Shown: in pieces, positions 25,282 to 48,625 of the stretch | Numbering within the stretch: position 1 is the first letter of the stretch | Layout: each line of letters begins with the position of its first letter | Source of the DNA: Trichosphaerium sp. ATCC 40318 | Lineage: Eukaryota; Protista; Tubulinea | NCBI GenBank assembly: GCA_038496445.1 | Contig: JALMLS010000424.1 | Location: forward strand, 1 to 64,000 | Direction: 5' to 3' | DNA length: 64,000 nt | Program-made: the position numbers and the translations under genes | Notes under the pieces: model-generated | Databases searched by the model: none | Told to the model about the DNA's origin: nothing | What the model saw: only the letters and a program-made list of their open reading frames with translations

Positions 25282-26317
25282 CAGGGCTGAAACTCAACAA
25301 GGCATTTTTGGACAATGCCTAGGCATTTTCATCAAATAATGCCTTATTTTTTACAAAAATGCCTAGTTTTTGCCTCATTCAAAAAGGCAAATACAAGGCA
25401 ATGCCTTATTTTTTGCTCCAAAAATGCCTTATATTTGATAAAAAATGCTTGCATCTGGTACACAAGATTGCAATGGTTTTGCCTGCATATTTTAAGGAAT
25501 TATGCCTTCAAATTAGGGCATAACTCATGCATCAATGCCTTATTTTGAAGGCAAAAAGAAAGCATTGTCATAGTCTACAGTGCCTAATAAACCAGGGCAT
25601 TTTCAGGTAATAACACAACTATTTATTTTATAATACAGTACACATACAATACACAAAACTCCTAAGTCCACATTTGAAAAAACCTTAAAGAAAATATGAG
25701 ATGGTGTAGAAAAAAAAAAAAAAAAACTTACCTTGTAGTGTTAGAATTCCGCGGTCCTGGAAATATCGCGGAGTTCACTCCTACTACTATTGTAGGTGAT
25801 ATAGGGTGCTGCGGTTCGTTTGGCAGTGGTTTCGTCTAATTTCATGAATTACTAAGAGCGCTAGATGCCTATCTATATAAAACGTCAGTAGGTGATGTGA
25901 AAAAAAAAGTGTAAAAGTTGTTTGACTGTTACTTACCTTAAACCACTTCCTTAATGTGATCAGTCCTATGATATAGTATAGGCAATGCCTTATATATCAA
26001 TTAAAATACAAGGCATATATTGCTTAAAAAAATAAGGCATAATAAAGGCATAAAGTACTTGCAATACAGGGCATTACTTGATTTTATGCAATGCCAAAAA
26101 ATGCAATACAAGGCATTACCTGATTTTATGCAATGCCAAAAGATGCCCAAAAATGCCTGGTATTAATGCCTTTTTGATGAAGGCATTGCCTTTTTGTAAA
26201 AATGCCTTATTTTATTGGGCATTGCCAAATGCAAATGCCTTGATTTTGCCATCTGATGCCAAATGTTAGAAATATGCATCATTTTTTAAGGCAATGCCTA
26301 GCTGAGTTTCAGCCCTG
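25282..26317 (+). mobile_element. Non-autonomous TIR element family A, copy 1 (1036 bp)
   Basis: 15-bp TIR CAGGGCTGAAACTCA...TGAGTTTCAGCCCTG; flanked by GT on both sides (2-bp TSD); dense GGCATT/AATGCC subterminal repeats; near-identical to copies at 30605 and 42856. Confidence 0.93.
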
Positions 26318-26875
26318 GTTTAGAATTTTATACGTACGTATACTGCCATGGATATATTCGCCTTTTATTCGCTTAGCTTGGAGGAAGTCTGCAAAGTGCT
26401 AATTTTGTTATTTTTGTTGGTGTAAACAGATTGACTAGGACGTTTTTTTGGTCACTATCTTGTCATGATTGGTAGCATTTTGGTAAAGCCAACATGGCGC
26501 TAAAGCGCAAAGTATGTGAGCTTAAACAATTGGGACTAACAACATCTGTTAGTTGATTAGAGGTACAAAAGACTGTAGTATTCTGGAGCAGATTCCCGTT
26601 GAGCTTCAGCTTATTATTACAGAGCTAGACGCTGATATTTATATTCTATGGCCTTTACTATCAAAACAAACATCACAAACACGATTTAATTACAACCTTG
26701 ACAAACACGGAAAGTGGCTATGTTATAGCTATTACAGAGGCATGTACAAAAAATACCAGGAAACGTGGTATTGTGGTAAACTACATGGAGCTTTTAAACA
26801 ATACTACAAAAGTGGCAAACTGTCAGAGCTTAGTCATTATGTTGATGGTGTCCTTGAAGGGGAGCTCAGTAGATA

Positions 26876-28013
26876 CAGTGGTAAATTTAAATTGGGGTTT
26901 TTAAGGGATTCCGTCTTAAAATCCTAAGGATTTATAAGCGGAAAATCTCTTCCTTTATTCCTATGGAATCCGGACGGAATTCCCTATGGAATCTGAATGG
27001 AATTCCCTATGGAATCCGGATGGAATTCCTTAAAGAATCTGGACGGAATTCCTTAAGGATTAACAACGGAATTCCCAATGGATTTTTTATGAAATTCCAA
27101 ACAAATTACCTTGAAATACTTTACAATATTTACATCAAGTCTTGTAGCACAAAATTCGTTTTATTTACCAATGATAATTTAGTTACGAAACGCAAATGTT
27201 CCACACGCTATCGTGTACAGGTCAAACTCATCAAATCTTTCCAATCTTTGGCCAAGAATTTTATCGCACCTGGTATCGCAATCATAAACTGCTAATAACG
27301 CATTTGTAGAAGCTAAAATAAGAAAAGAGTAGTTTTTTGATAAATTAAATGGAAATAACCTTCAAAAACAATGTACTTGAGATTAATGCCCTAAATGCGT
27401 GTCCTAGTGGTGTGTAAAGGCCTTTGAAATGCTTTACAAGCCTCAAAACAGATTAGTAAGCGATATAGAAATATTGCTGCTAACAAAAATCACCAAAATA
27501 CTTATCTTGCTTACTTTTTGATTTAACGTCTTTTTGTTGTATCCATTGGTTTTCTACACCAATAAAAGGGTGACGATGTGGTTTACTAAAAAAAAACTTG
27601 GTTAGGTAAGGCTTTGATAGTTGTCGAAATAATGAATAATTTTGAATTTTCACCAAAAATATTTTTCAAAGGAATTCTCACAAAATCCATATGGAATTTC
27701 GTTAAAAATCCCTATGGAATTCCATTAAAAATCCCAAGGGAATTCCCTACAAAATCCATATGGAATTCTGTTAAAAATCCCTTCAATTATTCCCATTGAT
27801 ATGCTGCCAACATTTGCCAATATTGTTGTTTGGGATTTTTTTACAAATCCCAAGGAATTCCTTATTTTAATGGAATATAGCAGAAATCCCATCAAAAATC
27901 CAATCGAAAATTCAGATTGCTTAGGGATTTTTTCCACAATTCTGCTAAAATCCTTAAAAAACACGGAATTTAACAGGATTCCAGAGGAAAATCCCGTTTT
28001 TAATTTACTACTG
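26876..28013. mobile_element. Non-autonomous TIR element family B (1138 bp)
   Basis: Imperfect TIR CAGTGGTAAATT / AATTTACTACTG; GGAATTCC/AAATCC subterminal arrays at both ends; interrupts the MORN gene with flanks ATA|...|ATG. Confidence 0.85.
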
Positions 28014-28624
28014 ATGGTATGACAATGATCAAAAAAAAGAAGAGATTGTTTATTCGAATGGTAAGAAGAATGGTGATTATAAAAGTTGGTACAGAAATGG
28101 TAATAAGAAGATGGAGTGTTGTTATATTGATGGTAAAAAGAATGGAGAATATCAGGTCTAAAATTTTAAGTGGTATATACCACTTTTTTTTTGGTATATA
28201 CCTTTTTTTTAGAGAAAATGGTATTATACGTGGTATATACCACTTACAATATACCATTTTTTAAGGAATTAAGTGAAACAGAAATCAGTTTTATCTTCCT
28301 TTTTGACTTCTCATTTGTTTCAAATAACAACAAATGGCATATACCAAAAAAAAGAGATATATACCAATTTGTTAAAACTTGCATAGGTATCTAAGAAAGC
28401 ATCGTGTTACACTGTCATTTACATTGCAATGGTCATATTTCATGGCCACTGCAATACAAACGGCAAACACATTTTACAGGTTGATAACACCAGTTGTAAG
28501 CCTCAGCGGTAGATGTTGTTACTTGTAAAGATAGTCAGTAAAGGATAAATACAGTCAGTTGGAATGTGTTTTATAAAGTTAAATACCAAATGTGTGGATG
28601 AAATGCTTCATTTGTATACACCAA

Positions 28625-29270
28625 TTTTAAGTACATCAAGTGAAGGTGCTTCTTGTAGGTACATCAAGTGTAGGCACATCAAATGAAAGCACTTCAGTTG
28701 TAGGTACATCAGGTGTAAGCACATCGAGTGAAAGCGCAGTATATCAGGTGTAGGCGCATCGAGTGAAAGCGCTTCAGTTGTAGGTACATCAGGTGTAGGC
28801 GCATCGAGTGAAAGCGCTTCAGTTGTAGGTACATCAGGTGTAAGCACATCGAGTGAAAGCGCAGTATATCAGGTGTAGGCGCATCGAGTGAAAGCGCTTC
28901 AGTTGTAGGTACATCAGGTGTAGGCACATCAAGTGAAAGCGCTTTATATCAGGTGTAAGCGCATCGAGTGAAAGTGCTGTACATCAGGTGAGGCAGTATA
29001 TCAGGTGTAAGTGCATTGAGTGAAAGTGCAGTTTATCGGGTGTAGGTGCATCAAGTAAAAGCGCAGTTTATCGGGTGTAGGTGCATCGAGTGAAAGCGCA
29101 GTTTATCGGGTGTAGGTGCATCGAGTGAAAGCGCAGTTTATCGGGTGTAGGTGCATCGAGTGAAAGCACTTCAGTTGTAGGTACACCAGGTGTAGGCGCA
29201 TCAAGTGAAAGCACTTCAGTTGTAGGTACATCAAATGTAGGCACATCAAGTGAAGGTGCTTTAGTTGTAA
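28625..29270. repeat. Minisatellite of mixed 35- and 45-bp units
   Basis: Repeated AGGTGTAGGCGCATCGAGTGAAAGCGC followed by TTCAGTTGTAGGTACATC or AGTTTATC; no unique spacers. Confidence 0.9.
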
Positions 29271-29669
29271 GAGCGTTTGTAGTTCGGACATCAGTAATTG
29301 GAATATTTGTAGTAAAGAGAGGTAGGCGGTTGAGTTGTTGGTTAAAAACCTTGATTGATCTATGGAAAGGTCAGAACAATCTTCATTTAAAACTTTAATG
29401 TTTGAAATAAATGTACCTTTCTTATTTTTTTCTGGAAATTTTATTGTATAGCGAGGTAAAAGTTCACGTGATATAGAGTACGTACCACTATATATCCTAC
29501 ACCAAGAAGTGCTGGTGATGAGTTGAGTGCTAGTACAAGGAGGTATTTGCCAATATAAGCAACAAAGGTTGTGGAGCTTGTCCATGTTTGGAATCCAGAC
29601 TCAAAGAACTTTACAACAGCGCCAACCTGTACAGAATGTCAAAATGCTTCACATGTTACTTGAGTGTGT

Positions 29670-30405
29670 TGAGGGGTTGAACATTGCTGTAGGGGTTTGG
29701 GCATCGCTAGAAGGTTTTGGGCATCACTGGAGGGTTTGAGCATCACTGAAGGTGTTTGAACATCACTGAAGAGGTCTGAGCATCGCTGGAGGGGTTTGGG
29801 CATTTATGAAAAGGTCTGAGCATCGCTGAAGGGGTATGGACATTGTTGGAAAGGTTTGGGCATCACTGAAGAGGTTTGAGCATTGCTGGAGGAGTCTGGA
29901 CATCGCTGGAGGGGTTTGGACATTGATGAAGAGGTTTGAGCATCGCTGGAGGGGTTTGAGCATTGCTGGAAAGGTCTGGGCATCACTGAAGAGGTCTGAG
30001 CATTGCTGGAGGAGTTTGGACATCGCTGGAGGGGTTTGGACATTGTTGGAAAGGTCTGGGCATCACTGAAGGGGTTTGGACATTGATGAAGAGGTCTGAG
30101 CATCGCTGGAGGGGTTTGAGCATTGCTGGAAAGGTCTGGGCATCACTGAAGAGGTTTGAGCATCACTGAAGAGGTTTGAGCATTGCTGGAAAGGTCTGGG
30201 CATCACTGAAGAGGTTTGAGCATTGCTGGAGGGGTCTAAGCATTGCTGGAAAGGCCTGAGCATCACTGGAGGGGTATGGACATCGCTAGAGGGATCTGGC
30301 ATCATTGGAGGGTCTGGACATCGTTAAAGGGTTCTAAGCATCATTGAAGGGGTTTGAGCATCACTGGAGGTGTCTGGACATTGTTAGAGGATCTGACATC
30401 GCTGA
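29670..30405. repeat. 20-bp minisatellite with ~60-bp higher-order structure
   Basis: Units such as CATCACTGAAGAGGTCTGAG / CATCGCTGGAGGGGTTTGGA / CATTGCTGGAAAGGTCTGGG in register every 20 bp. Confidence 0.92.
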
Positions 30406-30604
30406 AGGATTTACTTCCAGAAATTGGTAAAAGACTTCTACCAGTCTCGGCATACAGTTTTAATGCTGAGAAAATAAAGTAAGATACAAGTGAACAAACA
30501 ACAGTTGAAGGATTCATGAGCGTACCATTTTTACCAACTTTGAAGGCATTTACAAGTTGCTTAGCGGATCCTAGCAAATTTTCCCACTAAAATTAATGTC
30601 AGCA

Positions 30605-31686
30605 CAGGGCTGAAACTCAACAAGGCATTTTTGGACAATGCCTAGGCATTTTCATCCAAATAATGCCTTATTTTTTACAAAAATGCCTAGTTTTTGCCTT
30701 ATTCAAAAAGGCAAATACAGGGCAATGCCTTATTTTTTGCTCCAAAAATGCCTTATATTTGATGAAAAATGCTTGCATCTGGTACACAAGATTGCAATGG
30801 TTTTGCCTGCATATTTTTAAGAATTATGCCCTTCAAATTAGGGCATAACTCATGCATCAATGCCTTATTTTAAAGGCAAAAAAAAAGCATTATCATAGTC
30901 TATAGTGCCTAATAAACCAGGGCATTTTCAGGTAATAACACAACTATTTATTTTATAATACAGTACACATACAATACACAAAACTCCTAAGTCCACATTT
31001 GAAAAAACCTTAAAGAAAATATGAGATGGTGTAGAAAAAAAAAAAAAAAAAACTTACCTTGTAGTGTTAGAATTCCGCGGTCCTGGAAATATCGCGGAGT
31101 TCACTCCTACTACTGTTGTAGGTGAAATAGGGTGCTGCGGTTCGTTTGGCGGTGGTTTCGTCTAATTTCATGAATTACTAAGAGCGATAGGTGCCTGTCT
31201 ATATAAAACGTCAGTAGGTGATGTGAAAAAAAAAGTGTAAAAGTTGTTTGACTGTTACTTACCTTAAACCACTTCCTTAATGTGATCAGTCCCTATGATA
31301 TAGTATAGGCAATGCCTTATATATGAATTAAAATACAAGGCATATAATGCTTAAAAAAATAAAGCATAATAAAGGCATAAAGTACTTGCAATACAGGGCA
31401 TTACTTGATTTTATGCAATGCCAAAAAATGCAATACAGGGCATTACTTGATTTTATGCAATGCCAAAAAATGCAATACAGGGCATTACCTGATTTTATGC
31501 AATGCCAAATAATGCCCAAAAATGCCTGGTTTTAATGCCTTTTTGATGAAGGCATTGCCTTTTTGTAAAAATGCCTTATTTTATTGGGCAATGCCAAATG
31601 CAAATGCCTTGATTTTGCCATCTGATGCCAAATGTTAGGAATATGCATCATTTTTTAAGGCAATGCCTAGCTGAGTTTCAGCCCTG
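30605..31686 (+). mobile_element. Non-autonomous TIR element family A, copy 2 (1082 bp)
   Basis: Same TIRs; CA|...|CA 2-bp TSD; carries an extra ~39-bp tandem duplication near 31390-31470; nested in the giant element. Confidence 0.93.
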
Positions 31687-32888
31687 CACAAAATCAAGAA
31701 TAAATCACGTGTTTTCCAAAAAAAAACTAGTCAGTCAACTTACCTCTGAGATTGATACTTCCAGATTCATCAAGAACCATGACAATATCAAAAACTTGTG
31801 CACACTCATCTGTACAACCATCATGCGAGGCTCTTTTAAAAAAAAAAGGTTAGTTGAAACAAACTGGTTTTTTTTGGTTAAAAACGTACTGATCTTCCAA
31901 AAAAGTATTGTTAGGGAAGGAAGAGCTCTACTCACGTTGATACTGTGCAACTCTTCGCTTGTAGAAGTGCATACGCAATTGTAGTCGCTTCAATCTTGCT
32001 TCAACTCGACCTAGGTTGCTGGTAAGCGCACTTGAACATAAAACAAGAAAACCCAAAACCAGTCTTTGAATTGGTACTAAATGATCTACCTCTTGTGATA
32101 AACTCTAGAAATGGTACTTGTTCCTCTGGTTCGTACTCAAAACCAAAAGGAGCAAATATCTCATCTATCGGCTATTAGCTACGAAAAACTGAATTATGTT
32201 AGCAATGCGCAAAAACTTAGAAAACAGTATGTGATTGGATGATAGCAAAGTAAACATTTTGATGGTTTTAGTTGGGTATGTACCTCATTTTGGGTTTATT
32301 TTGGGTTGGACGCTTTGTAGGCGCTGCAGCAGGTGAGGTACAACTGGCAAGACAACTAGCGTTTGGCTAGTTTTGGTCGCTTGAGAGAATTTAATGTATT
32401 TGCGCTGAAGGGTAAGTTATTTGAGGCTATAAAAATTGTTAGGCGTACCTCAGCATTTTTATTTCTCAACCATAAAAACTCTTGATGTAAATAGCCATTG
32501 GCATCTCATTTAGTTGCCCTATCAGTTCCAAAGCTATTTGTAAGTCAGAAAAAGCCTGGTCAGCAAATTTATTTTATCCCGGCCAAAAACAACAGCTGTA
32601 AGCACAAAATACTCGCAAAAATAAGTTACACAAATGTGTAAAGTGTCAGTGCTGAGGCTTGTTGTACAAGTCAGAAAACGAAGGGTTTGTAGAAATAATT
32701 TGAGTTTTTTAAATGAATGTCAAAGCCGTAGTACGTACCTCACATTCATAATCTAACGCAGGCACCTGCAAAACAATGTTGTTAAAAAGCTGGTAAAATA
32801 CCAGCGTTAAAATTAAACGTGCAAGTTGGGAAAAATAAATTTCCGTGTTTTGTTTTTTTATTTTCGTTGAAGTTTTTTTTTTCTTACC

Positions 32889-33260
32889 TGTTTGAAATGC
32901 ATTAATCTCCAGGATATTCGTTTGGAACCACGGTAATGAGAAAACAGCCATTGTTATAATAGCTGCTGGTATTGAAACTGATATCGTGAGGCCTGAACAA
33001 AATTTGTTAGAAAATGAAGCGTCCCGTGCTGTAAATAAACTAGTGTGTAATCAAACACGTTAAAACACTCGTGAGAAGTATTGTTAAAGCAAAACACAAC
33101 GTTTTAAAGTTCCTTACCTGCAAATAAGCCCAAATACGTATTTGCTGATGACAGTAGCAAACTAAGTATCAAAACCATAACGACTGCCTTTACTACGCAC
33201 TGTCAAGCGTCATTGTTGAAAAAATAAACGTACCTGTAATTTCTGGCAAATCACGCTCAC
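32889..33260 (-). pseudogene. Captured N-terminal fragment of an OPT-family oligopeptide transporter (3 exons)
   Basis: Spliced translation LPEIT/VKAVVMVLILSLLLSSANTYLGLFA/GLTISVSIPAAIITMAVFSLPWFQTNILEINAFQT matches the conserved OPT N-terminus; the remaining TM helices are not seen. Confidence 0.78.
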
Positions 33261-36200
33261 TGTCATCCTCCACAGACACTACCACATGATGATTGTAACT
33301 CCGTGTGCACTGCATTCCTAGTGCATCACAAGTACAGTATCCAAGCGTACAAACGGACTTGACAGGATTAGCGATAGGGATAATATATCGCACAGGTGTA
33401 TGGAGATACAAATGTAATGGTGATCTACAAGTTCCATGCCAGATGCATTCGTCTTTTCCTGAAGAATGATACAACGATAATCATATACAAGGTATCCTCT
33501 TCATTGTCAACCTGTGAGCTAAAACAGCCAATGAGATGAAACAGAAGAGAAAAAAAAAAGAATGTACTCTTTCCATTCTGCTATAAGTTGTCTTTCGAGT
33601 TCTGATGTCCAGTTAACGCCAGACAGCTTGTTAACCGTTGTCTTTAATGTCTCAGCCTGTGTTTTCTTCTCGTTATTGTACTCTTCAAGGTTAAGGTCAT
33701 CGTAGTTATCTATAGGCCCTTCTTCGCCTTCTGGTATCGCTTAGTATTTTGAGCCACACTAATTTTTCGGTGAGTTTTTCCTTTTCCAAGAGTTTCGTTG
33801 TTATAACACATAGAGCTTATACGTACTTCATAACCTCGAGAACATCTCTAAGAGTAAGTGGGTATGCCACACGGGCAATAACTGCCGGGTTTAAGGACAA
33901 GATATCGCGAAAATTATGTACAACCTACGAAAGTTTTAATAAAGTTTTCTAAACAAACATTCGTACGGTTCTAACTGCTTTCTGTAGTCCAATGAGCACT
34001 TTAGATGGCTTCTCAGCAAGTATTCTATTGAACACATACATAAAAGGTAACTACAGAAGAAATAAGGCATAAACAAGAACAACAAAGCACACGTGTTAAG
34101 TTGGTAGCAAAAAAAAAACAGAAAAAAACTCACATGGCACAAAACACCTTCCAACCCAATCGAAAAGTTCTCCACCATTGTTGCAATATGCTCGTTAGTA
34201 TAAGGGTTATTGGTAAGATACGTTTCAGCCAAAATCATATAGTTCGTAGCAATTCGATGAGTGCAATATCTTCGGACATAGCTCTTTTCTTGTGTTAGAT
34301 AGTTTAGAAGCAGGAGAAAAAACGAACCCTGTAGTTGAATAGTTTATCGTTTGCGAATGTCTCAGCGATCTCTCCGCTCATCAGCTGCAGCATCATATTC
34401 AGCATTCTCTTCCCTTTGTAGATCTGCTATGTCTTGAAGCTCAGTAGCTCTAGTGCCTAAACAAGAATTACAAAACATGACTAGACTTCAATATTAACTT
34501 ACCACCTGTAGCATGACCTCTGCTCTTTTTCTTAACAATGAGGCTACTCTAATGGGTACCGTGTTGCTTAAAGAGTCTATGTAACCGGTGTACTAACTCT
34601 ATCAAGGTCACCAAATACCTAGAAGGAAATCAGCGTACGCCAATAGAAAAAAACAAAGAGATCAAATAAACGTACTCTTTAGAGTTTTGGTTCGGCTTGT
34701 AAACACTCATCAAGTGTTGTACAGGCGCAAGTACTGTTTCTACCTTGTAGAATATATTGGCTTGTATGGTTTGTGATATTCTATAACTTTCAGTGTCATT
34801 CATTAGCGTCAAGGCACCGAGCTATGTAAGAGCGTTAAACTTCACTAAAGAAGAAGAAAAAGATCTTTCAAAGTCAAAAAACGATGCCGTTCTGGCGTAG
34901 CACGTGGTTTTTAAAAACCCCCCATACCATTGCATTAAGCGCAGATACAGCTGCTTCAAGTTTTTTGAATCCCGACTCTCTGGTGAGACACATGTATTTA
35001 TGTTTGAAGAAATAATACTAAAAACATTCATTCCCATAGTAGATCTACAAAAAAACATCAGCACGAGTACAACTCTACATTCGTTCTTGTCGCGACACCG
35101 TACCTAATTATTGGTACGCCATATGTAGGTTCAAGCATATCTTTGCCTATTTGAATCAAAGAACGTCAGTAACCAACAAAAGCACTCAAAAAAAGAGTTG
35201 TATTTAGTACCCTTTTTTTTTATGCAACTATCTGCTGCTAAATTAAGCTTATGCTCCGTCCAAAGAATAAATCGATTTAGATATTGGCCACGGTTTAACA
35301 AAAAACAAAAATAGAAAGTACATGTTTCCACATGAGTTATTAACGTCAGTTAGCCGAGGAAGTTAGGTTGTCAAAAGCCGGATAGAGCTAAATCGCTAAA
35401 AGGCAAAGACTAGTTACAATCTACCTACGCTCTCTCACCATCAACAGTGCAAACTCTACATTTGCATTAGCATGAATATTACAATAAATAAAATACCTTT
35501 CATGCAGTTTCTTCTTTAGGCGCCTGACCGGGGTAAGCTACATAAATACGCGTTAATTAACAACGAGCTCACCCAATACGTGAACAAGCGCCTGCTCATC
35601 AAATACAAAATAAAGTGGCTAAAAGAGCTTTTGCGTAACTGAGTTGTACTAAAGCGTACCGTGGTAATACAAGCATTGCCAAGCAATTTATTCATCCGCA
35701 TTGATAGCATAGATTGGTTAATAAACTACATTACATTAGTCATACTCGCCCGCTACAGCACACTGAATTAGTTTTTTTAAAGCAAGCGAAAAGTTATTTT
35801 CAATCGTGTAAGTACTTCGCTTGAACAATTTACACGAGGAAACGTAGTGTACGTACTATATCAGCTGCGATGTTGTTTGTTTAAGCAAACTTACTTAACC
35901 CTTGTTTTCATGCCAATTGAAGCATCGCTGTAGGTAAGTGGTATTTGTACACGAACGCATAAGTGGTAAAATATTTCAACAATCTTTCTCTAACTTGTAT
36001 TAGCTCTTGAATAGCGTAAGAAATAAAGCAAAGTACGGAAATTATTTAGCGGTTTGGCGAGCATTTTCATTTTTAAGCTTTTAGCCTATTTTGCAAAAAT
36101 TCATAATTGTCTCTTGTCTACACCAACGTTATCCACACACACAAGCGATGTAGAACAGAGCATTAAAACCATTTCAGAAATTTGGAAAATGGAAGGTTTT

Positions 36201-36370
36201 TTTTGGCGAACCTCTTGCTTAAAAAGCATCCCAAATGCTTTTATTCGCCCAAATACATAGATGTTTTCTCGGACAAATCTTTTGCAGCTTTTTTTTGAAC
36301 ATGCCGTATTGCCGCGTTTTTGACTGTTTAAAAAGCAATCTCGATAAAAAGGACTTAATCGTTTGTGAAG

Positions 36371-39338
36371 ATGAGTCAGCTACGTGCTGCAGCCAGCAAA
36401 AAGAGGTATGAATTTTTGTTTCAAGGAAACAATTTTGACGTTTTGAATTTTACCAATATTGGTATCACAGCATAGAGCATGTACTAACGTTGTGTATTAG
36501 AAAACGTGTTGCCTCTGCCAAAAAACAACAAAACGTGAAAAAGATAAAAGTGACATGCGTTTTAAAGGACACGGCGAATGAAACTGAACAGGCACAGTTA
36601 CCTTACCTATGCACATATTTATTTATTGCTACAATAGATATCTACAAATTCAACAAGACAGGAAGAGCTAAAAAAGAACATTAAGGACACAATAGCTAAC
36701 TTGCAGGCGTCGCTTGATGAAGTGATTGAAATTGGAGGTGTGATAACGCTTAAGCAACCATGGGCAAAAAAGCTGAGTATAATTCAAAAGTTTTACTCTG
36801 AAAAGTATGTGAAGATGGTAGTTGACCGCTACTTACCACCGAACATTCAAAATCCCACAAAAACAATGTTAAAAAACATTGACGAGGTATATTTTGTGGA
36901 CTTTTTGTAGACTCACCTTTTAATAGGCTAAACGTAAAGGTAAACAATACAATGTCTCTTACACTGCTTTGCTGGAAATGGGATTTGAGGTACAAAGAAG
37001 ACGATTACAAGGTGAGATATGCTTTTAATTATTTACTCTTGTGTTCATTGTTTTTTTAGAAGAACGTAAAAACTTAGAGAGTGCATCTCCTTATGGCACC
37101 TTAAATAAATTTTTTGCCAAGAGAGATTTAGTGGTTGTCTTAAAAATTCTTGGTGGTAAAGAGTTGCCTACTTCAAAGTGTGTACCTAAAGACGCTGACA
37201 AAAACAACAAAAGAAGGGTTGAGCATGTCATTTTTGAAAAAGGAAAACATGCCACTTTGTTAAAGATCCCTTGGGACAAATCCGCACATGATGTTTGGCT
37301 TACCAAGTTTTCTTTGACAAAAAAGTTGTTACAAGCATGTAGAAGCTTTGCTGTTACAGCAAAGAATGAGCTCAAATATAAAGTACGTCAATCATTAAAT
37401 TAGCAATTACTGGGGGTTTTTTCTTAAAGTACTATTTAGTATTGGTCAAAACCAGGCAATCTATGGCATACAAATATTATGAGAACCTACAAAAGTCAGA
37501 ATTATGGCTCTATTCTGTGTGTCACTCCTTTTTCTGGTGCGTTATTCCCATTGAATCTGTTTTAAACGTCTGACTTGAGGTGGTAGAAAAATTTTGTGGT
37601 AATTCTGAAATTAAAGTACCTATTGAGTTGTCGGACACTAGATTGGCACTATTGCAACCTCTAATTGACATTCATAACCACTTGACATCAAATGCGCAAC
37701 AATTTAATGAAGTTGAAGAGGCAGGCATGACCATAGAACTTAAGGTACATTGATTGTTTATGATGTCGATTACTTTTTTTGTAAAGGAGTGGAAAAAAGG
37801 CAAATCTAATTTGCGGATGCATACAGATGGAGATCAAGGACAATTATACTGTGGTAGTGGTATAACTTGTTTTGGATTCATGTTAAAAGATACAAATGGA
37901 GGAGCACAAGCCACAAAAGATATTGTGATTAGAACAAGCAAGTTTTACCATGATAATCTCACTGACTATTAACACCATAACAGAAGGCGGAGACCTTAAG
38001 GTCAGCAGCACAAACTTTGTGTGGGCTTTGACAAATGTGGATGAAGCAGCAAACGTTGCTCAAGGCTTTGGGCCAGGAATAGTAAAACATTCTGTAGCAG
38101 TCAAAGTGCCTACCAAAGTTAGATATTTCTCGTTGATTATCAGACACTTCATCAAAGCAATTCCAAAAATGAGTGCTGATGCCATAAATAAGCAAAAGTT
38201 TTTACTAAGTTTGGCAAGCAAAACTTACAAACCACAAGTTATTACAACATTCATTGATGGTTGATCTAAAAAATGAAAGATTCTTAGCTAATAGACACTT
38301 GCTGTTATCATCGCCACACACGCTACCTGAACCAGGCAATGGCATTACAATCATTCAGCCTGGAACTAAACTGGTTTACAATATTGACGGGTACTGCTTT
38401 TCTTATTGGTTTTATTGTTACATACTAACTCACTACGTAGTTTACATGAAATGGGCTTGATTGCTTCAAATGAATTTACATTTCAAGGCCACGTGACTGT
38501 AGGATTAAAAGTTACATTAAAGAAAAGAGTTCTTGCAAAGGAGTATGTTCAGTTAATTTGTTTGTATCAACAGCTATTGATTTCGAGGTTTAGATACTTT
38601 GATGGAGATTGGGCATTGGTGTACTCTACTGCAACTAAAAAATCACAACAGAGAGTCAATAATTTGATTAAAAGCTCATTGCAAATGCAATATAAGAATG
38701 AAGAGGATCCAAACATTGGTTGTACATTCTTAATAACTCCGTGCAGTATTTTAAAGCAATATGATAGTTCCAATTATGATGATCTTGAATGTACTCATAC
38801 CATAGTAGTTACAGATTCACTTTTTAATATTGTGTTAGGTGGCTGAGAGCTTGGTGTAATCTCTAGATGGTATGTTCACGGTTTAGTCTATTATGGAAAA
38901 CAACCAGTTGTTGTATTCAGAAAAATGAGACGGATTAAACCAGCAAAAGTAATTAGTCAACCATTTGGAGAAGCTGAACCTTCTAAAGAAATATCTTTGC
39001 GTCTCAACTGTAAGTGTTGTACACCATGCCCGCACTTTTTGGACATTTTTACTGATGAAGTTTCTGATTTGGAGCTATCTGATAAAGAGATAATTGAAAC
39101 TGAAACGCAACATTGGAAGCAAGTGTCAATGTCATCAAGTACTAGTATTTTATAGTTTGTGTTTATTAACTATTATTGCAGAGCTTACAAAGATCGACAC
39201 GAAGTTTATCATCACAGACAAACAAAGAGTAAAGCACACAAAGACATATAATCGTGTGTCAGTAACTTTAAAAATGGAATGTTTACTGTTTTAGGTTTAC
39301 ATGAACTTATTGATAAACAAACAGTAATAAATGAATAA
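36371..39338 (+). CDS. Transposon cargo protein: putative 2OG-Fe(II) dioxygenase domain followed by an SRA/YDG-like domain and a Cys-rich tail; may carry lesions
   Basis: HxD in LRMHTDGD (H 37820), GGDL, distal H in VKHSV (38088), R in VRYFSLIIR (38121). Downstream LHEMGL...EYFDGDWALVYS...QQRVNNLIKSS...VVVFRKMRR; CKCCTPC. Apparent in-frame TGA at 38844-38846. Confidence 0.55.
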
Positions 39339-39464
39339 TTATCATTTACACGGCCTCTCAGTATTCATTTTTTCAATAACTCATTGCAGTTTAGGTTTTT
39401 ACAAGTGACTAACTTAATTGATTTGAGGAACATTTACATTTTTTTTGTTTTAGTGGCACGTGTG

Positions 39465-42400
39465 ATGGCTAAGGTGTATTGTTCTGCGTGTAAAAAGTGG
39501 TACAGGTCAAAGTACTATAAATATGAACATTTAAACTCCAAAGCTCATAAACGAGCATTGCTTGGCCTTCATACAAGTATGCGTTCATTATAACTGGCAA
39601 ATAATAAACTAAATCAAATCCAATAGGTAGAGTTTACAGTGTCCAAAATGCTGGTATGAATGGAAAATGTGGAGTAAATGATACCAATGGCGTAGTTGAA
39701 TACAATGAATGTGAGCTTGGTGATGTTAGCATTGATGCCTTGAAATACATGAGCGACGGAGACAACAGCAACGATGGAGGCGACTTTAGCAGTGTGAGCG
39801 ACGACGCAAAGAGTGTGAACAGCGTTGACAGTAATAACATGAGCGATGAAGGCAGTGATGACGTTGACAGCAATAACACAAGTGACGACAGTAGCGACAG
39901 TGATGTAGGTGACTTTAGTAGCATCAGTGATTCAGAAAGTGTAAACAGTGTTGATGATGATGATGGCAATCTCGGCAATGTGCCTTATCTGACAAACTTG
40001 TTACAAAGTTATAGGGGTATGAGCAATGGCGCACAAGACAATGACGTGTGCATGCATTCTGTAGAAATGCCATGTTACTTGGAGGAGAGCAACAGAAGCA
40101 TAGATTATAGTATGTCATTTATTTATTAATAGTTGTCAACTCACTTACAATACTAGCATCTGTTGAAGAGCTTGCAAGGGAGCAAATGCGAAGAGAACAA
40201 GCTCCACCAAAATTTAGTGCAGCAAAGAACTTTGATGATGCTACAGCCATAGACAAATTAGGCTATTTGTTGTTGGCGCTGAAACTGGAACATAAGTTGT
40301 CTGGTGTGTTGTGTGCAAAAATCCTGAACCTGTTGAACACAGCTTTGATCCTTTTTGGCGTGGATAAAAAAGGTGCTTTCAATTGTTGTGCTTTGAATCT
40401 TACGCTAAGTATGTTTTAGATGTTGTGTCAGTTAGTATTCAAACACTGTTCAAAGAGGTAACCGCCAAGGTATGTTATAAATACTAGTAAACGTTTAGGT
40501 AATGAGCATTTAGTTTTTGCCTAAATTTGAACCCAAACAGATTTTTGTGGACAAAAGAAGCAAGTCAGATAAAGTTCTTTCCAGAACTACGGTTCCCTTT
40601 TACCCTCCTTCAAAACACATTAAAAGAGTACTTTATCATGTTCCAGGCAGGGACAGTATTAAAGAGTGTATAAGTTTAGAACCGGCAACAATGCCTACGT
40701 ATTTTGAAGACGGCACTGTGCAGCACGAGAGAGTGTATCAAGGACCAGAAACAGGAACCAACATCAAAAAAATATTTGCAGATGTGCTTGATGAATATGC
40801 AGCTGACAAAGAAAACACCATACTACTTCCAGGTGATTCAACATTATAGGTAGTTGTATCTCACAATACTTAGCTTATATCACCAAAGATGATTTTACTT
40901 ACGACAAAAAAGATAGCCTTGGTCCTCTTTATATGGTGGTTTGGAACTTGCCCAACAGTGCTACTGCTACTGGAAAAATGGTCTTATCTATATTGCCCAA
41001 ATGCTTGCATGAAGAAGATCTTTTAAAACATGTAGTGGAGGATTTCTTAGAGGTCTTTAACGGCATGCGTTGCTACATTCAAAGTGAAAAAAAGGCAAGT
41101 TTTTTCCTTTGTTTTGTTGTTATACAATTGTTTCTCTAATGTGTTTATCTTGTACAGTATTATACGGTGTATTTGAGGTTGACTAAGATTTTGGGAGACA
41201 CACAAGGATCCAACAGGTTGATATGTATGTTAACGTTTTAAACAATGATTTATTAAAGCCTTACTTTGTTTAGCAATGAGAAGTCCAACATCTCACTATC
41301 CTTGTCGAATATGTAGAGTGCCAAAAGCTGCTTTTCAAAAAGTGACTGATGCTCAAGCGTTAATTAAAGCTTATAGAAAAACTCACAACACTCTCACTCT
41401 ATTGCATCAAAACTCGTATAGTGAACACTATAAAGAGTGTTTCAGCATTCATAGACAGGTACACTATTAATAAAATACTCACTGTACTTTTTGACTTATA
41501 AAATGTGTTTAGTCTCCATTTAGCAGCCTATTGTGATACAGGTTTGACTTCTTTTTGGATTCTCCATACTGTCCATTTCACAACATCATATTGGGTATTG
41601 CTAAAAATGTGTTGGCTAAGACGTTGTCAACAATGCAACAGTTATCTTCATTGGAACACTTCAAAAAGACTGTAAATTGTAGAATCAAATATATCAGAAA
41701 ACAAAACACAGGTTTGGGAAAGTGTGTAGTTGGCCACTAGCTTTTTTCCTCTTTTTAAACACAATTTTTAGGATGAAAGCAGTGTGGAACAAGACAGGGT
41801 GCTTGGTGGGTGATAGTTGGGACGGAGCTGATATGAGGACATTTTTAAAAATGTCAGCATTGGTTTTTCGAAATATCTTGCCTGACAACTTTATGGCAAT
41901 GTGGTAGTTTTGTATCCCTTTTTATTTATTCAAATTCTCTAAATAGGAAACACTTGTTGTCATTTGTAGTGTTGAGTCAAAAGGATTACTTGTATGAAAC
42001 TCAAGTCAACAATATTAGCAAAAAATACAAAACTTTGATAGGTAAAATCAAACTTTGCTTTCCAGGTACGTTAAATTCCTTGTGTTTATATGTAATAAAC
42101 CATTGATATGTGTATAGATTGGAACTTGAATACAACTAACTTTCATGTACCTTATCACTATGAATACATGATTAAGAAATTTGGAGTATTTAAACACTTC
42201 AGGTTAAAATGATGTCTAAGTTGACATTTTGCTAAAAGTTTTGCCTTAGTACTTATGCGTGTGAGTCCAAACATGCTACTATAAAGAAATGGAAACAATC
42301 ATCAAAAAATCACAACAAAATCAGGTTTGATTATCACTCATACTTGTCTTTTTTAGTTGATACACTTTAGAGACATAACTAACAAAGAAATACCGTGGCT

Positions 42401-44166
42401 TTTACTATCATATGCTGGCAAATTTGACAAGTTGTGTGCTAAGATTCAGTACAATGTCAATGTGGTTGCTGAGCCAGTTTCTATTGCTTTCACTCGTCCT
42501 TTTTATCAAAGACCAACAACTAAGTGGATGTTAAGTGTGTAATTGTGAAAATGAACTTACAACTTACATCATTTTTTAGGAAACAAACACCGAGTCACAC
42601 ATTTAAGTCACATGGAAAAGTTGGCACTTGAAGCTACTTTTCTTTTAGCTTCTGAACAACTTTTATCCGGATTGTTTGGCCTTTATAACTCGATCACTGC
42701 ATCAGACATGTCTATCAAACTGTCAATGTCATCTGAAACTCTTTTTAAGTCATGGAGAACTGCTAAAAATGAGTCTAAACAAGATTGCATTTATGTTAAA
42801 ACACAAGCAATTTATCAAAGCATGACAAATGCTAATGCAGTGTTTATATTTGGCACAGGGCTGAAACTCAGCTAGGCATTGCCTTAAAAAATGATGCATA
42901 TTCCTAACATTTGGCATTAGATGGCAAAATCAAGGCATTTGCATTTGGCAATGCCCAATAAAATAAGGCATTTTTACAAAAAGGCAATGCCTTCATCAAA
43001 AAGGCATTAATACCAGGCATTTTTGGGCATCTTTTGGCATTGCATAAAATCAGGTAATGCCTTGTATTGCATTTTTTGGCATTGCATAAAATCAAGTAAT
43101 GCCCTGTATTGCAAGTACTTTATGCCTTTATTATGCCTTATTTTTTTAAGCAATATATGCCTTGTATTTTAATTCATATATAAGGCATTGCCTATACTAT
43201 ATCATAGGACTGATCACATTAAGGAAGTGGTTTAAGGTAAGTAACAGTCAAACAACTTTTACGCTTTTTTTTTCACATCACCTACTGACGTTTTATATAG
43301 ATAGGCATCTAGCGCTCTTAGTAATTCATGAAATTAGACGAAACCACCCCCAAACGAACCGCAGCACCCTATTTCACCTACAACAGTAGTAGGAGTGAAC
43401 TCCGCGATATTTCCAGGACCGCGGAATTCTAACACTACAAGGTAAGTTTTTTTTTTTTTTTTTCTACACCATCTCATATTTTCTTTAAGGTTTTTTCAAA
43501 TGTGGACTTAGGAGTTTTGTGTATTGTATGTGTACTGTATTATAAAATAAATAGTTGTGTTATTACCTGAAAATGCCCTGGTTTATTAGGCACTGTAGAT
43601 TATGACAATGCTTTCTTTTTGCCTTCAAAATAAGGCATTGATGCATGAGTTATGCCCTAATTTGAAGGCATAATTTCTTAAAATATGCAGGCAAAACCAT
43701 TGCAATCTTGTGTACCAGATGCAAGCATTTTTCATCAAATATAAGGCATTTTTGGAGCAAAAAATAAGGCATTGCCCTGTATTTGCCTTTTTGAATGAGG
43801 CAAAAACTAGGCATTTTTGTAAAAAATAAGGCATTATTTGATGAAAATGCCTAGGCATTGTCCAAAAATGCCTTGTTGAGTTTCAGCCCTGCATGTACGT
43901 CAAAGAGAAACCAAAACTAAACAAAATAATTTCATTGTAGGTACTACACAATTAAAGACCTTGACACCCCTTATGACGCTGCCAGTGAGTTGTTAATGTA
44001 AGTTCTGGTCCAATTTTTTGGTTTGTCTGATAACAATAGGGTTAAATTGGAGCATAAAATAGCATGTATACCTCTGAAATGTGTCTACAAATTGGCACAA
44101 CTTTACAATACTCCAGATGACCAAGTGTTATTGATCAATTATTATCATTATGCCATACCGGCTTGA
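39465..44166 (+). CDS. DDE transposase of the CMC (CACTA/Mirage)/Plavaka type, spliced, disrupted by family A copy 3
   Basis: N-terminal CSAC...H...H zinc finger, acidic tract, LALKLEHKLSG, KDDFTYD...LGPLYMVVWNLP, ILGDTQ, YPCRIC, CPFHNIILGIAKN, NFHVPYHY...KFGVFKHFSTYACESKH. Confidence 0.85.
42856..43891 (-). mobile_element. Non-autonomous TIR element family A, copy 3 (1036 bp, inverted)
   Basis: Same TIRs, CA|...|CA TSD; removal restores TTT GGC AT followed by a GTACGT splice donor in the transposase gene. Confidence 0.93.
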
Positions 44167-44213
44167 AATACCAGCAAAATTGGGTCAATAATTTTAGTTA
44201 ACACAAAACACAA

Positions 44214-46565
44214 ATGTTGTCAGAACCTGTACCTCCGCCTGCTAAAAAATTAAAAGATGAGGAAGTATTGAAGTGTTTACTGTACCTTTAACAATTATTT
44301 TTTACTCTTGCTGTATTTAACTTTTTATTAGTAGTATAAACTTACAATTGAATACTTTAAACGGCTTATGTACTTCAAATGAACAAGCTATAACAAAAAT
44401 TGCAAACACTCAACAAGTTTTAAACGCTCCCACAATTGAAGAGAAAGATATTCCCACGCCTGACCATGTGCGCTGATGCCAAACCTGCAATATTACATTT
44501 GTAACATAATTTATTTTTTTAGAGCGGATTGTCAACAATAATTGTACGGACACTGATAGAAGAAGGCGCGAGAACACACAAACAAAAAGTAGCAACTTTT
44601 ACGAAATTAAAAAAAGAAGAAAAGTACAAATCATATGACTTCACCTCAAGCAACAAAAAGCTTATACGATGCTACACAACTGCTTTTAGAAATTTAAAAG
44701 GTTATATCACAAAGTATGTGCGGACAATAAAAGAAACAGACGCAAGCATAAGCTCAGAAGACGCTTGTACGGCATATGTGTTTTAGGGGTTTTTTACATT
44801 AACATTTTATTTTTTCAGGGGCTATAATTCTTAAAGCTCTTCAACACAATGATTTCTGTATTGCCATTTCCTTTGTAAGTACTCCGAAAACAGAGGAGAT
44901 GTTTAAAACAATGGTACGAGAGACATAAAGGCTTTTTTTGTTGATTCACAATATTAATTGTTTTTGGTCTCAACATAACAGTAATTTACAGTTCGCCAAA
45001 ATATGGAAGCTCTCTCCTCAAAAAGCATCGAAACACTACAAACAAGCACAAGTTTCTGGACATAGACGTTTTGTGGCTAACAATTATAAACACTTGTACG
45101 ATTTTCCTTTTTTTTGCTTATTTGGTGTTGACTTGACTTGTAGAACAACATTTGTGCAAGATAAAGCAAAAGGATTGCATTTAAAAACACAAATTGAAGC
45201 ACTTTCTGTAACTATGGGGCTGTCACAACCAAACACAGTAAATATGGAAAACAACAATACACCTAGCATGTTTCCTGTCGACGGCATTGCTGGTAATCGT
45301 TCCAATGATACGTTTTCTTTTGGAATAGATAGAAGTACTTTTGATAATGTTTTTCCTGGTGGCTTTTCTTCAAACTCAATGCTTACTTCTTTCAGAAATG
45401 TGGCTTCTATTCCAGGTACATGTTATGTCTGCCCATTAGTATTGTTTTTAACTCTCTTTTTAGCTGTTTCTCCTAATAGAAGTGGTATTGTTGTGCCCAA
45501 CAATTCCAATGACTTAATTTCAGACAGTTTTTTTGGTTCTGATTTAATTGATGACAGCGACTCACATGGTGGTACTACAATTTTTAAGTCTGGTACAACA
45601 ATTGCTCCTACGATTGACCAACACAATACACTTGCCACTAGCCGACATGCTGTTGCTACTTTTAGCGAAATAGTAGGTGATAACTTTAATACAAGTGTCG
45701 ATTTAGCCTCTGCAAATGGCTCTATTGGTTCTAGCGTATCATCTGTCGTTACTCATGGTATTTCTGGCACTCAAGTAATTGAGTCAGTTGTCACAAGTAA
45801 GAGTTACTTATGCTATGTTTGGTTATTCATTATTTTGTAATAGCAACACAGCAACTTGCATTGGACGCACAGCTTTCATTTCAAGGTCAAATATATTCAT
45901 TTGTTGATTTTGTTTGGCTTTATAGCAATGATGGAACTCCAAATGCAAAGCAATTGATTTCTTATATGGCTTTGTTAAAACAAACACTCTGTACTCAAGG
46001 TATGATACATTAAAAAAAAAATAATATTAAACCACAACAGCAGTAAACTTTGAAAGCATCATAATTGGTTTGGAAAAAGATTTAGAACACACTCCCGTTT
46101 TGGTATGTAAATAAACACCACAAATTCTTATTATTGTATTGAAGGACAAGAGCAACAGCAGTAATTGTGTTTTTGTTTTGGTGCCATTTGTTTTTCAAGG
46201 TCCAAATCCTGCCGTTGTTACTTTGGCGACTATCCAAGATGACTACACTATAAAATGTACCTGCTTTTTTTTTTTTCACATCTTAATAACTATGTTGTAA
46301 GGTTGGTTATCAATTGTTGGAGTTGCCAATGACCATTGCATCTTTGTACGTGATTTTACATTTATTTTTCAAAATTGGCATTCTTGTAGGTCCAAAAGTA
46401 GCTCCAGACAACATATCTGGTTTTGTGAAATCTGTTGCTCATTATAAAAAAATAGTTATTTGGATCAAAATCTTCATTGCAAGATAATAAAGGGAAAGCG
46501 GTGAAGTATTAACTTTACGAGCTAATGCAGAAATGGTAGCACGATATGCCTTGAAGCTTCTTTAA
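44214..46565 (+). CDS. Hypothetical transposon-encoded protein (NLS-like start, Ser/Thr-rich middle), spliced; end uncertain
   Basis: MLSEPVPPPAKKLKDEE start 48 bp after the transposase stop; long ORFs 44529-44786 and 44938-45840 with embedded introns. Confidence 0.55.
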
Positions 46566-48625
46566 AATCCAAAACAAAGGTGCTGTGTTTATGATAACTA
46601 GATATTAATATGTTTGTAGAAAAAGAAAAGAACAGAGAATTTATATAACAATTTTGGAAGCAACGCAAAGCAGCTGTTGAGCCTTTCAAGATTGTGTTCA
46701 TTGTTTGGAGAATTAATTTACATTGAAAAACAAGACAAGTTGTCCACTCACTTTTTGTCGTGTATGTCCAATCTTTGTATGTTTTGTGCTAATGTAACAA
46801 TGTAGTTAACTCAACTGTGCAAACACACAGCATGAGCACTATTGTAGACCAGGCTTCAAAAGGATTTATTACGTTTTTTGAATAATGTAATTACATATCC
46901 AATAAATAGAATGAATTGTAAAAATAGTTTTTTTACCTATTTATATAACGGACTGCTGTCAACGATAATAAAAAAAAAAGTATATACCATTAGCAAAGTG
47001 GTATAAAATGCAAGTTACAAGTGGTATATACCAAAAAAAAAATGGTATATAGGAATGGTATATTAGGTTTTTTCAAGTGAAAAAAAATGGTATAAATTCC
47101 GTGTTTATACCACTTTTTCCTGGCATATTAATGGTATATTTTACAAGTATACCAACTTTTTTTGGTATAATATACCATTTTTTTTGGTATATAAGCTGGT
47201 TTTTGGTATAAATGTTGAAAAGTGGTATAAAAAGAAGGTATATTTGATTATAAAATAGTATGGCAAAAAAAATATGGTATATGAGATGATAATAGTTGGT
47301 ACATGAGTGGTAATTTATGGTCAAGTGGTTTGTTTAAAAATGATAAGTATGAAGGAACTATAAAACGATTTTATGAGTGTGGGTTACTACAAGAGTTTAG
47401 TTTTTATACAGAAGGTTTTAGAAAACATATAGTATATTGGCATAAAGACGGAACAAAGATGTAGATCGACACATACCCAGCTATTAGTGTTCATTAAATA
47501 AGTTGCAACTTCCACCAGTTAAGTGAAAATAGTAGATACAGAAAGTACTTGCAAATGTTATTGCTAGAATTGTACTACATGGTTAAGAACAAGTGCAATA
47601 AATGCAACAGATTGACTTGTGAAAGATGTCGACTCATACATTAATCGAAAATTTCTTTATCTTCTTTTTTCACAACGTGCCAGCAACACAGTTCATGCCT
47701 GTTCACAGACTAATCAATACCAAAATGATTTAAACAAACTGCCAGAATCATACTACAACGTGTGGGCATGTGGTTTATCTTTCAGCGTGTTGTCTGACAA
47801 AATATTGTCAATGCTCAATCACATATCTGTGTTTCTGATACAGGTTTATGTGAGACGCTGCCATTCAGTATAAGATGTAGGCAAGCGTACAAGTATAGCT
47901 CATACGTCAACCACGCACTTCGTGCGTTTTTTTATTTCGGCACCTAGTCCCTACTTTAACATTTCATATTAGGAAGCCAAGCCAACAATAGTAGAATACA
48001 GGTGCATGACGTTGGAGGCGATAGAAACGGAACTTGATAATGCTCCTAATAAGCTCATGTTAAAGCACGTGACGCCTTTAAAAACCTCTTTTGCGAAGTG
48101 CTCTACAGTGGTGTCATAACTTTTACTACCGTGAATTTCGTGACACATGACCAGTAATCCAAAGGATTTTACCTGAGATTTGGACATCTGCTACGAAACT
48201 TAAGGACACTAGTGAAGCATTAGCAGTGGCGTACAAGTATCATAATTGCTTGATAAGGTATTTCAATCAAAAGACAAAGCAGCTTTTTAAGTCAGCTTAA
48301 TTATCCGTACCAGTTCCTTTGAGACTACCGTGCAAGACCTACAATCGAATCCGTCATTCAAAAACTTGTATATTGACGCTGTCTGATGTCAACGAAACGA
48401 AGGAATCAAAAAGGAACTTTTTTTAAAGTCATTTGTGTTTGATTACAGTAACGTATTTCATACACTCTGAAAAGACGTTTATGAGAAGAAAAAAAAGTTC
48501 ATGTGTTTTACCTACAGTTTTCAATGTCAAGTCAACGTCAAAATACACGATCGAAGCAACAAAGCCGCTGAGCGTTTATTTTTCATATTATGGAATACTG
48601 TTATTAGTTTAATGATCTACAAACA

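Follow-up and report, generated by a model that had tools for sequence, protein, structure and literature searches.

A 19-kb multi-gene transposon of putative CMCT affinity inserted with exact ends in a MORN gene of Trichosphaerium

The CMCT clade of transposons comprises EnSpm/CACTA, Mirage, Chapaev, Transib, Plavaka, and ESTA, as well as Lanisha, and is defined by 5'-CA..TG-3' termini, a target duplication (TSD) of 2–5 bp, and a D-D-E transposase in which C(2)C, H, and H(3-4)H lie after the second D but before the E (PMC12730594). Bostrychia moritziana and other red algae contain giant Plavaka elements of 17.4–19.1 kb, mostly as degenerate copies, with three accessory genes: PAG1, an adenine methylase-SET gene, and a ParB-like-oxygenase gene (bioRxiv 10.1101/2025.02.11.637652). 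Fungal TET+ PlavakaB, EnSpm, and ESTA elements carry dioxygenase cargo proposed to counter methylation (Kojima 2025, PMC12730594). The protist Amoebidium has large, methylated, multi-gene giant repeats flanked by Plavaka transposase, which form intron-poor, tyrosine recombinase-rich tandem clusters of up to 50 kb (PMC11244446), and plant Pack-CACTA and ULP-carrying CACTA elements, with CACTA termini and a 3-bp TSD, capture host fragments, have subterminal repeats, and in some families carry ULP1-like cargo (PMC6379663, PMC2528002).

The element described here, from a window of 64,000 nt (the whole stretch of Trichosphaerium sp. ATCC 40318 DNA analysed), is a new, divergent member of these already described giant cargo-carrying transposons, and its architecture has close precedent. 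A first-pass annotation had implied that a giant cargo-carrying member outside fungi would be novel; the red-algal elements and the Amoebidium repeats were already published. Compared by description, the element resembles the former in size, in having a putative DDE transposase with three accessory genes and internal tandem arrays, and in that one accessory gene may, by motifs recognized by eye, couple a 2OG oxygenase to a DNA-binding domain, a combination also putative in one of the red-algal genes; it differs in the SRA-like stretch that follows the oxygenase-like part and in that no methylase or SET gene was seen. It shares with the fungal TET+ elements the CA..TG termini, a TSD within 2–5 bp, a D-D-E set combined with C(2)C plus H(3-4)H, and putative dioxygenase cargo, whereas its CAGGT/AGATG tips match no named lineage, its TSD is AT rather than TA, its dioxygenase motifs look more AlkB-like by eye, and its host is an intron-rich protist. 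Unlike the Amoebidium repeats, it is intron-rich and has exact TSD-bounded ends; with the plant elements it shares subterminal repeats and probably the capture of host gene fragments, and the Ulp1 likeness of its gene F is by eye. Fungal AlkB-SAD/SRA fusion proteins have the domain order proposed for gene C, whose membership among them is putative, and the passages of PMC4738411 on these fusions do not present them as cargo of transposons.

The element interrupts an F-box-like/MORN gene (Table 1). At the left junction ...GGA GAA TAT is followed by CAGGTCT, and at the right junction ...TGAGATG is followed by AT AAT AGT TGG. Removal of the insert and one AT yields an open frame, ...KNGEY-NSWYMSG..., that runs to a normal stop. 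The insertion is genuine and exactly bounded, confirming the boundaries, length, and AT duplication first proposed for it, as well as the interruption of a MORN gene that resumes in frame: both the frame and the MORN_2 register are restored. The 19-kb element moved as one unit into the gene, leaving a 2-bp duplication that is fixed by the MORN frame and the repeat register. Blunt insertion without duplication is ruled out, as the empty site would run into stops, and so is a right end leaving one extra codon, which breaks the register. The chance of CA..TG tips with a 2-bp duplication at a random pair of points is about 2.4e-4.

Table 1. Features of the element and its host gene (positions in the window)
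Feature	Position	Strand	Details
Host F-box-like/MORN gene, piece 1	26553..26875	+	MORN_2 E 4.4e-4; F-box likeness by eye
Host gene, piece 2, up to left junction	28014..28152	+	MORN_2 E 4.7e-5
Left copy of 2-bp AT target duplication	28151..28152		
Whole element	28153..47288	+	19,136 bp; starts CAGGTCT, ends AGATG
Left subterminal array, GGTATA(TACC) modules	28170..28367		GGTATA/TATACC 9x in left 300 bp
Tandem array, 15/35/45-bp units	28634..29269		no long frame survives the mixture of non-triplet units
Tandem array, 20-bp units	29671..30408		about 35 units (non-triplet)
VWA-like fragment	30525..31849	-	two short exons, about first 45 aa of domain, DxSxS motif
Nested MITE	30605..31686	+	CAGGGCT TIRs, CA duplication; within intron of VWA-like fragment
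Decayed spliced gene pieces	31850..36000	-	stops and frameshifts; model poorly resolved
Gene C (putative dioxygenase-like)	36371..39155	+	722 codons, 12 exons, all introns GT-AG or GC-AG
Gene D (putative CMCT-type DDE transposase)	39465..44166	+	966 codons, 16 introns
Nested MITE, same family	42856..43891	-	CA duplication; inside transposase exon
Gene E	44214..44928	+	186-codon spliced frame, no lesions
Gene F	45214..46565	+	Ser/Thr-rich N-half, globular C-half
Right subterminal array, GGTATA(TACC) modules	46980..47282		GGTATA/TATACC 17x in right 320 bp
Right copy of 2-bp AT target duplication	47289..47290		
Host gene, piece 3, in-frame resumption	47291..47464	+	weak MORN_2 match, E 0.28

Gene D had been read as a spliced DDE transposase, with splicing and a profile search proposed as its check. 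The joined model without the MITE carries the motifs named then (CxxC, H..LG..K, and H..H....FG...F.T...ES.H), and the 8/8 CMCT signature residues occur in order, assigned by motif and spacing and not by alignment to reference proteins: D1 in KDDFT (40885), D2 in GDTQG (41194), CxxC (41303), the H of CPFH (41570), H(3)H (42144), and the E of CESKH (42260). A strict motif string, defined post hoc, was found in 0/20,000 shuffles, and a loose string in 1.6%. An N-terminal C2H2 finger was detected by exon-level Pfam search (zf-C2H2_jaz, E 0.0023). The sole homologue found in a representative protein search is a 76-aa protein fragment (P0003; 39% identity, E 5e-6); three other matches, all long multi-stretch proteins, were treated as spurious. 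In the profile part of the check, gene D, searched exon by exon (22–110 aa each), gave no transposase match in Pfam, PHROGs, NCBIfam, PDB, Atlas, or by fold. A single-exon structure model (pLDDT 52) had an unrelated protein as its best structural match (Z 4.7). The first reading also omitted an internal TGA at 41534. Because this TGA and the nested MITE disrupt the transposase, the copy is, on its sequence, non-autonomous. Very probably, the locus holds a non-autonomous copy of a large CMCT cut-and-paste transposon from a lineage too divergent for the profiles used.

At least three further genes in a divergent layout had been claimed; three are present, but they lie on the same strand as the transposase, and divergence is confined to the decayed minus-strand segment. 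Gene C contains 2OG-Fe(II) dioxygenase-type motifs recognized by eye (HTD at codon 354, HSV at 428, RYFSL at 439), with an SRA-like stretch, also by eye, 3' of them. It has one internal TGA at 38844, or bypasses it through a 33-nt intron; a frameshift considered in the dioxygenase-like region was ruled out, since a GC-AG intron resolves it. The dioxygenase-like part had no profile match exon by exon and no Atlas match, and exon-level searches gave no profile or homologous-protein match for SAD/SRA; the structural matches of a single-exon fold model (pLDDT 39) were without meaning. By eye, the dioxygenase motifs are nearer AlkB-like than TET-like. Gene E, which has no Pfam match, could from its position and size be a second, DNA-binding/TnpA-like ORF. 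The start and 3' splicing of the gene F model are uncertain, with two in-frame TAA codons near 46485. By eye, its C-half faintly resembles Ulp1/C48 proteases; the catalytic His-Asp-Cys triad is incomplete, with no His before the W-L-S-I-V strand, and there is no Pfam match.

The left third of the element differs in composition from this plus-strand core. CpG observed/expected is 0.48 in the core vs. 0.85 in the host (p 6e-11), a gap that is smaller in coding exons alone (0.47 vs. 0.64, p 0.047), while the minus-strand segment has 0.89 vs. 0.85 in the host. From this host-like CpG, the minus-strand segment is probably captured host DNA. Its gene pieces had no Pfam match, and no Rfam match was found within 24000–50000. 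The VWA-like exons apparently do not share a reading frame, and they lead into the tandem array; their sole PDB matches, all weak, are VWA proteins (PTMP1, E 0.19; integrin alpha-1, E 1.6). One site of the 20-bp array varies between CG and TG across units (9 vs. 13). The MITE family has three copies with 12–24 differences among them, and its target duplications in the window are GT and CA. The family core would be a co-oriented four-gene cassette (the dioxygenase-like/SRA-like gene, the transposase, and ORFs E and F), and the left third, with its arrays and minus-strand pieces, would probably be host DNA captured Pack-CACTA style prior to this jump. Alternatively, DNA lying between two adjacent members of the family was captured by their outer ends, which jumped once, making the 19-kb layout unique rather than a family architecture. 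The host-like CpG, the truncated VWA piece, and the differing tips are in keeping with such a one-off hybrid, the mechanism of which has been demonstrated for Pack-CACTA (PMC6379663); we give it a substantial but minority chance, and it is compatible with the non-autonomous CMCT reading, altering only which parts belong to the family core.

The termini, 2-bp TSD, subterminal arrays, and ordered D-D-CxxC-H-H(3)H-E residues together support placing the element in the CMCT clade. Its tips are CA..TG, its AT duplication falls within 2–5 bp, and the spliced model contains D-D-E plus C(2)C, H, and H(3)H. Short-motif arrays near both ends are characteristic of EnSpm/CACTA, and arrays of this type occur at both ends here. 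This supports a large, multi-gene, cut-and-paste CMC/CMCT element in an intron-rich protist, in agreement with the CMC-superfamily membership claimed by the first-pass annotation on the ends, TSD, and arrays, to which the eight ordered residues add. The narrower Plavaka label was not supported. PlavakaA has TGT..ACA termini with a 2-bp TSD, PlavakaB CATCA..TGATG with 2–3 bp, and EnSpm/CACTA proper CAC..GTG with 3 bp (PMC12730594). The CAG..ATG ends found here differ from PlavakaA; against PlavakaB, the TSD length fits and the right AGATG agrees at 4/5 positions, but the left end is CAGGT. Termini and TSD also differ from EnSpm/CACTA proper, and the AT duplication (GT and CA for the MITEs) differs from the TA of ESTA. 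Descent from Plavaka proper, with termini that have since diverged from the consensus seen in fungi, would account for the 2-bp TSD and for the size and 2OG-oxygenase-like cargo that parallel red-algal Plavaka, and is nonetheless less likely than not, given ends that fit neither Plavaka type, the longer TIRs of published examples, and the lack of a Plavaka Pfam match on any single gene D exon.

The GGTATA arrays reported near both ends are borne out by counts far above the 0.11 GGTATA/TATACC per 300 bp found elsewhere, and a 29-bp inverted pair (97%; 28174–28202 and 47023–47051) is common to both ends. Ungapped comparison of the two ends shows no TIR beyond CA/TG, as claimed; with one 2-nt gap, however, the tips do align (CAGGTCT vs. 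CA--TCT, 5/7 nt matching). The right tip AGATG equals the left-end complement AGACCTG less two bases, and its asymmetry probably reflects damage to this one copy rather than the family trait originally proposed. That the transposase accepts two different ends is improbable: unequal tips are directly visible, and AGATG resembles the PlavakaB end TGATG (4/5), but a single gap restores the agreement, and the tips of the MITEs in the window are symmetric (CAGGGCT). No match came from scans of viral and metagenome loci or from further searches for homologous proteins. Two metagenome contigs contain a 21-mer of the left end exactly, a match attributed to chance (one 65% GC bacterial locus, nothing shared beyond 22 nt).

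By extension from CACTA biology, the GGTATA arrays at each end would serve as binding sites for element proteins, the DDE enzyme would cleave at the CA..TG tips, and the AT duplication would result from cutting the target with a 2-nt stagger. In this reading, the copy acquired two MITEs and a nonsense codon once inserted, and its right tip probably lost 2 bp. Gene C may help the element escape DNA-methylation silencing. That it does so by reading and oxidising methylated bases and thereby blunting host silencing, by analogy with TET and PAG3 cargo, has in our estimate a little less than an even chance. If gene C combines a methyl-base reader with a dioxygenase, cut-and-paste elements of fungi, red algae, and amoebae would each have enlisted a distinct 2OG oxygenase to oppose methylation by the host. 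More tentatively, the locus might represent giant CMCT transposons of a protist lineage not yet described, with CAGG(T/G)CT tips and an AlkB-type dioxygenase fused to an SRA methyl-DNA reader that counters silencing; this would be a third solution, independent of TET in fungi and PAG3 in red algae. The copy studied here is dead; as an exactly bounded example, it adds an intron-rich amoeba-like protist to the hosts of giant cargo-carrying CMCT transposons and is useful for family annotation and for locating an intact copy.

In the interrupted gene, residue 3 of the right-hand piece aligns, in a weak match, to MORN_2 profile position 8, which puts the last residue of the left piece at repeat position 5 and the first of the right piece at position 6. 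MORN genes are repetitive, yet a misassembly, or two MORN genes juxtaposed by chance around unrelated DNA, is very hard to credit when the right piece lacks its own start and resumes the repeat with no residue skipped or duplicated, and when TSD, CA/TG, and arrays all coincide at both junctions. The probable start exon of the host gene lies at 26494.

Host coding sequence reads GGA GAA TAT up to position 28152, where the insert opens with CAGGTCT; the insert closes with AGATG, its last base being 47288, and host sequence then resumes as AT AAT AGT TGG. In silico deletion of 19,136 bp and one AT resulted in an open frame running through KNGEYNSWYMSG to a stop codon. Pfam MORN_2 matches all three host gene pieces. 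The left piece ends in K-N-G-E-Y, repeat positions 1-5, and residue 3 of the right piece falls at profile position 8, so the repeat is continuous, with zero residues gained or lost. Frame and register together fix the ends and the 2-bp duplication, bearing out the exact boundaries, length and AT duplication proposed in the first-pass annotation. By calculation, two points picked at random would show CA, TG and a matching dinucleotide with a probability of ~2.4e-4. The insertion into the MORN gene is thus real and exactly bounded, and the whole unit entered in one event, with decay afterwards.

Coordinates of the element, its genes and repeats, and the MITE copies
Feature	Positions	Strand	2-bp duplication	Remarks
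Element	28153-47288		AT	in host F-box-like/MORN gene
Tandem arrays	28634-29269; 29671-30408			
Minus-strand gene pieces	31850-36000	-		spliced; stops and frameshifts
Gene C	36371-39155	+		
Gene D (transposase)	39465-44166	+		
Gene E	44214-44928	+		
Gene F	45214-46565	+		
MITE copy 1	25282-26317		GT	outside element
MITE copy 2	30605-31686		CA	inside element
MITE copy 3	42856-43891		CA	inside gene D

A second interruption of this host gene is a 1,138-bp non-coding element (26876-28013) with CAGT(G/A)GTAAATT inverted ends, 23-bp GGAATTCC arrays on both sides and an imperfect duplication (ATA/ATG). Four separate insertions cluster within and next to this short gene (24000-47500), and CpG is mostly low at ~24000-31500 and 37000-47500; the region is possibly a methylated insertion hotspot.

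The gene D model, checked by hand with the MITE and its duplication excluded, has 966 codons and 16 introns of 41-63 nt (15 GT-AG, one GC-AG). Its sole internal stop is a TGA at 41534, and the splicing assigned at one junction (40388-40513) is uncertain. The product begins with a C2H2 finger (zf-C2H2_jaz, E 0.0023) and an acidic tract, which precede, in order, KDDFT, WNLPN, GDTQG, CRIC, CPFH with LGIAK, HVPYH, KFGV and CESKH, bearing out the CxxC and His/Glu motifs noted earlier for a spliced DDE transposase. The CMCT clade (CACTA/Mirage/Chapaev/Transib/Plavaka) is defined as combining three catalytic residues, two Cys and three His with CA..TG termini and target duplications of 2-5 bp (Kojima 2025, PMC12730594); every one of these traits, assigned by motif, occurs in the element and transposase model. 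Shuffled sequences gave the ordered pattern in 1.6% of cases in a loose version and in 0 of 20,000 in a strict, post-hoc version. Exon-by-exon profile, PDB, Atlas and fold searches named no family. The only homologue found, an unnamed 76-aa fragment with 39% identity, retains DDFT, GP-Y and the strand and helix after them. We file the putative transposase in the CMCT clade from motifs and end anatomy rather than profile score.

The first 300 bp of the element hold 9 copies of GGTATA or its complement and the last 320 bp hold 17 (background outside the ends, 0.11 per 300 bp), confirming the arrays first reported there. A 29-bp stretch inverted between the arms with a 97% match indicates that both ends come from one family. 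The tips were initially described as lacking a real TIR beyond CA/TG, and the element as asymmetric-ended. Compared ungapped they do agree only at CA/TG, as genuine asymmetry would have it; a single 2-nt gap, however, aligns CAGGTCT to CA--TCT, making the right tip AGACCTG minus CC, and symmetric tips are seen in all three MITEs of the window. Genuine asymmetry is accordingly improbable, and the unequal tips are quite probably a lesion of this copy. Two metagenome contigs (L001, 273-293; L002, 2065-2085) match the left end over 22 nt, but this was rejected as chance, the match lying in an unrelated bacterial locus of 65% GC that holds kelch-like and LVIVD-like genes.

The MITEs (1.04-1.08 kb) have CAGGGCTGAAACTCA TIRs with CAGGGCT tips and a CpG o/e of 0.32. 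They are 97.7-98.8% alike at aligned sites, differing pairwise at 12-24 of 1,036 bases. These few differences, with about one nonsense codon apiece in genes C and D, mark the copy as young but dead; it is non-autonomous.

The plus-strand genes have a CpG o/e of 0.48 (95% CI 0.41-0.57), compared with 0.85 for the host flanks and 0.89 for the minus-strand segment; the pattern persists, at 0.46, 0.80 and 0.80, respectively, once CACGTG and GTACG are removed. For coding exons alone, the plus-strand genes give 0.47 vs. 0.64 (p 0.047). The low core and host-like minus-strand values are indirect evidence, but they would fit a core cassette that has been subject to CpG methylation for a long time and minus-strand DNA that was captured later. 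Targeting of repeats by 5mC is reported for Acanthamoeba and other protists (PMC12344493). GTACG occurs 0.9 times per kb in the element core (36371-46565), 2.0 in host flanks and 4.2 in the minus-strand segment; many core splice donors are GTATG, as expected from CpG decay of GTACG donors.

Gene C (722 codons spliced; one TGA at 38844, avoidable by a 33-nt intron) contains HTD, GGDL, HSV and RYFSL, whose spacing we take by eye to recall a 2OG-Fe(II) dioxygenase; the stretch that follows presumably resembles SAD/SRA. Profile, Atlas, homologue and fold searches supported neither likeness. AlkB-SRA fusions are described in fungi (PMC4738411). By analogy, an anti-silencing role for gene C is conceivable but somewhat doubtful, and a protist lineage carrying an AlkB-SRA anti-silencing gene is unlikely. 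Gene E is a clean frame of 186 codons, and gene F faintly resembles Ulp1 by eye but lacks the catalytic His; plant CACTA elements carry ULP domains (PMC2528002). On the minus strand, two exons correspond to the first ~45 residues of a VWA-like domain (sole PDB matches VWA proteins, weak at E 0.19 and 1.6) and continue into the two tandem arrays, whose repeat units are not multiples of three.

The CA..TG ends, 2-bp duplication and motifs uphold a CMC-type, multi-gene cut-and-paste element. The Plavaka label first attached to it is not supported, as the termini fit neither PlavakaA nor PlavakaB, nor fungal EnSpm or ESTA; its lineage within the CMCT clade is thus left unplaced. The element is a new, divergent CMCT-clade member whose architecture is precedented in red algae, where giant Plavaka elements of 17.4-19.1 kb carry internal tandem arrays and three accessory genes, one of them encoding a putative 2OG oxygenase joined to a DNA-binding domain (bioRxiv 10.1101/2025.02.11.637652); the element here would work alike. 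Fungal CMCT elements carry TET dioxygenases as cargo (PMC12730594), and Amoebidium has Plavaka giant repeats (PMC11244446). Following CACTA biology, element proteins would bind the subterminal arrays, cleave at the CA..TG tips and make a 2-nt staggered cut at the target. By analogy, host DNA was probably captured as in Pack-CACTA (PMC6379663), and gene C might, tentatively, counter silencing.

Elsewhere in the window, a 179-bp foldback (56872-57050; outer arms 16-bp perfect, inner arms 42-bp) is a small MITE or hairpin. Divergent F-box-like/leucine-rich-repeat frames with 66/129-bp coding repeats lie at 58169-58987 (-) and 59395-60048 (+). A kinase-like frame with HRD/DWS-type features (1125-1907), by eye presumably akin to Crinkler-associated or fungal-type protein kinases, is flanked by a ~100-bp inverted pair (661-762/2305-2399, 91% identity), possibly the ends of another element.
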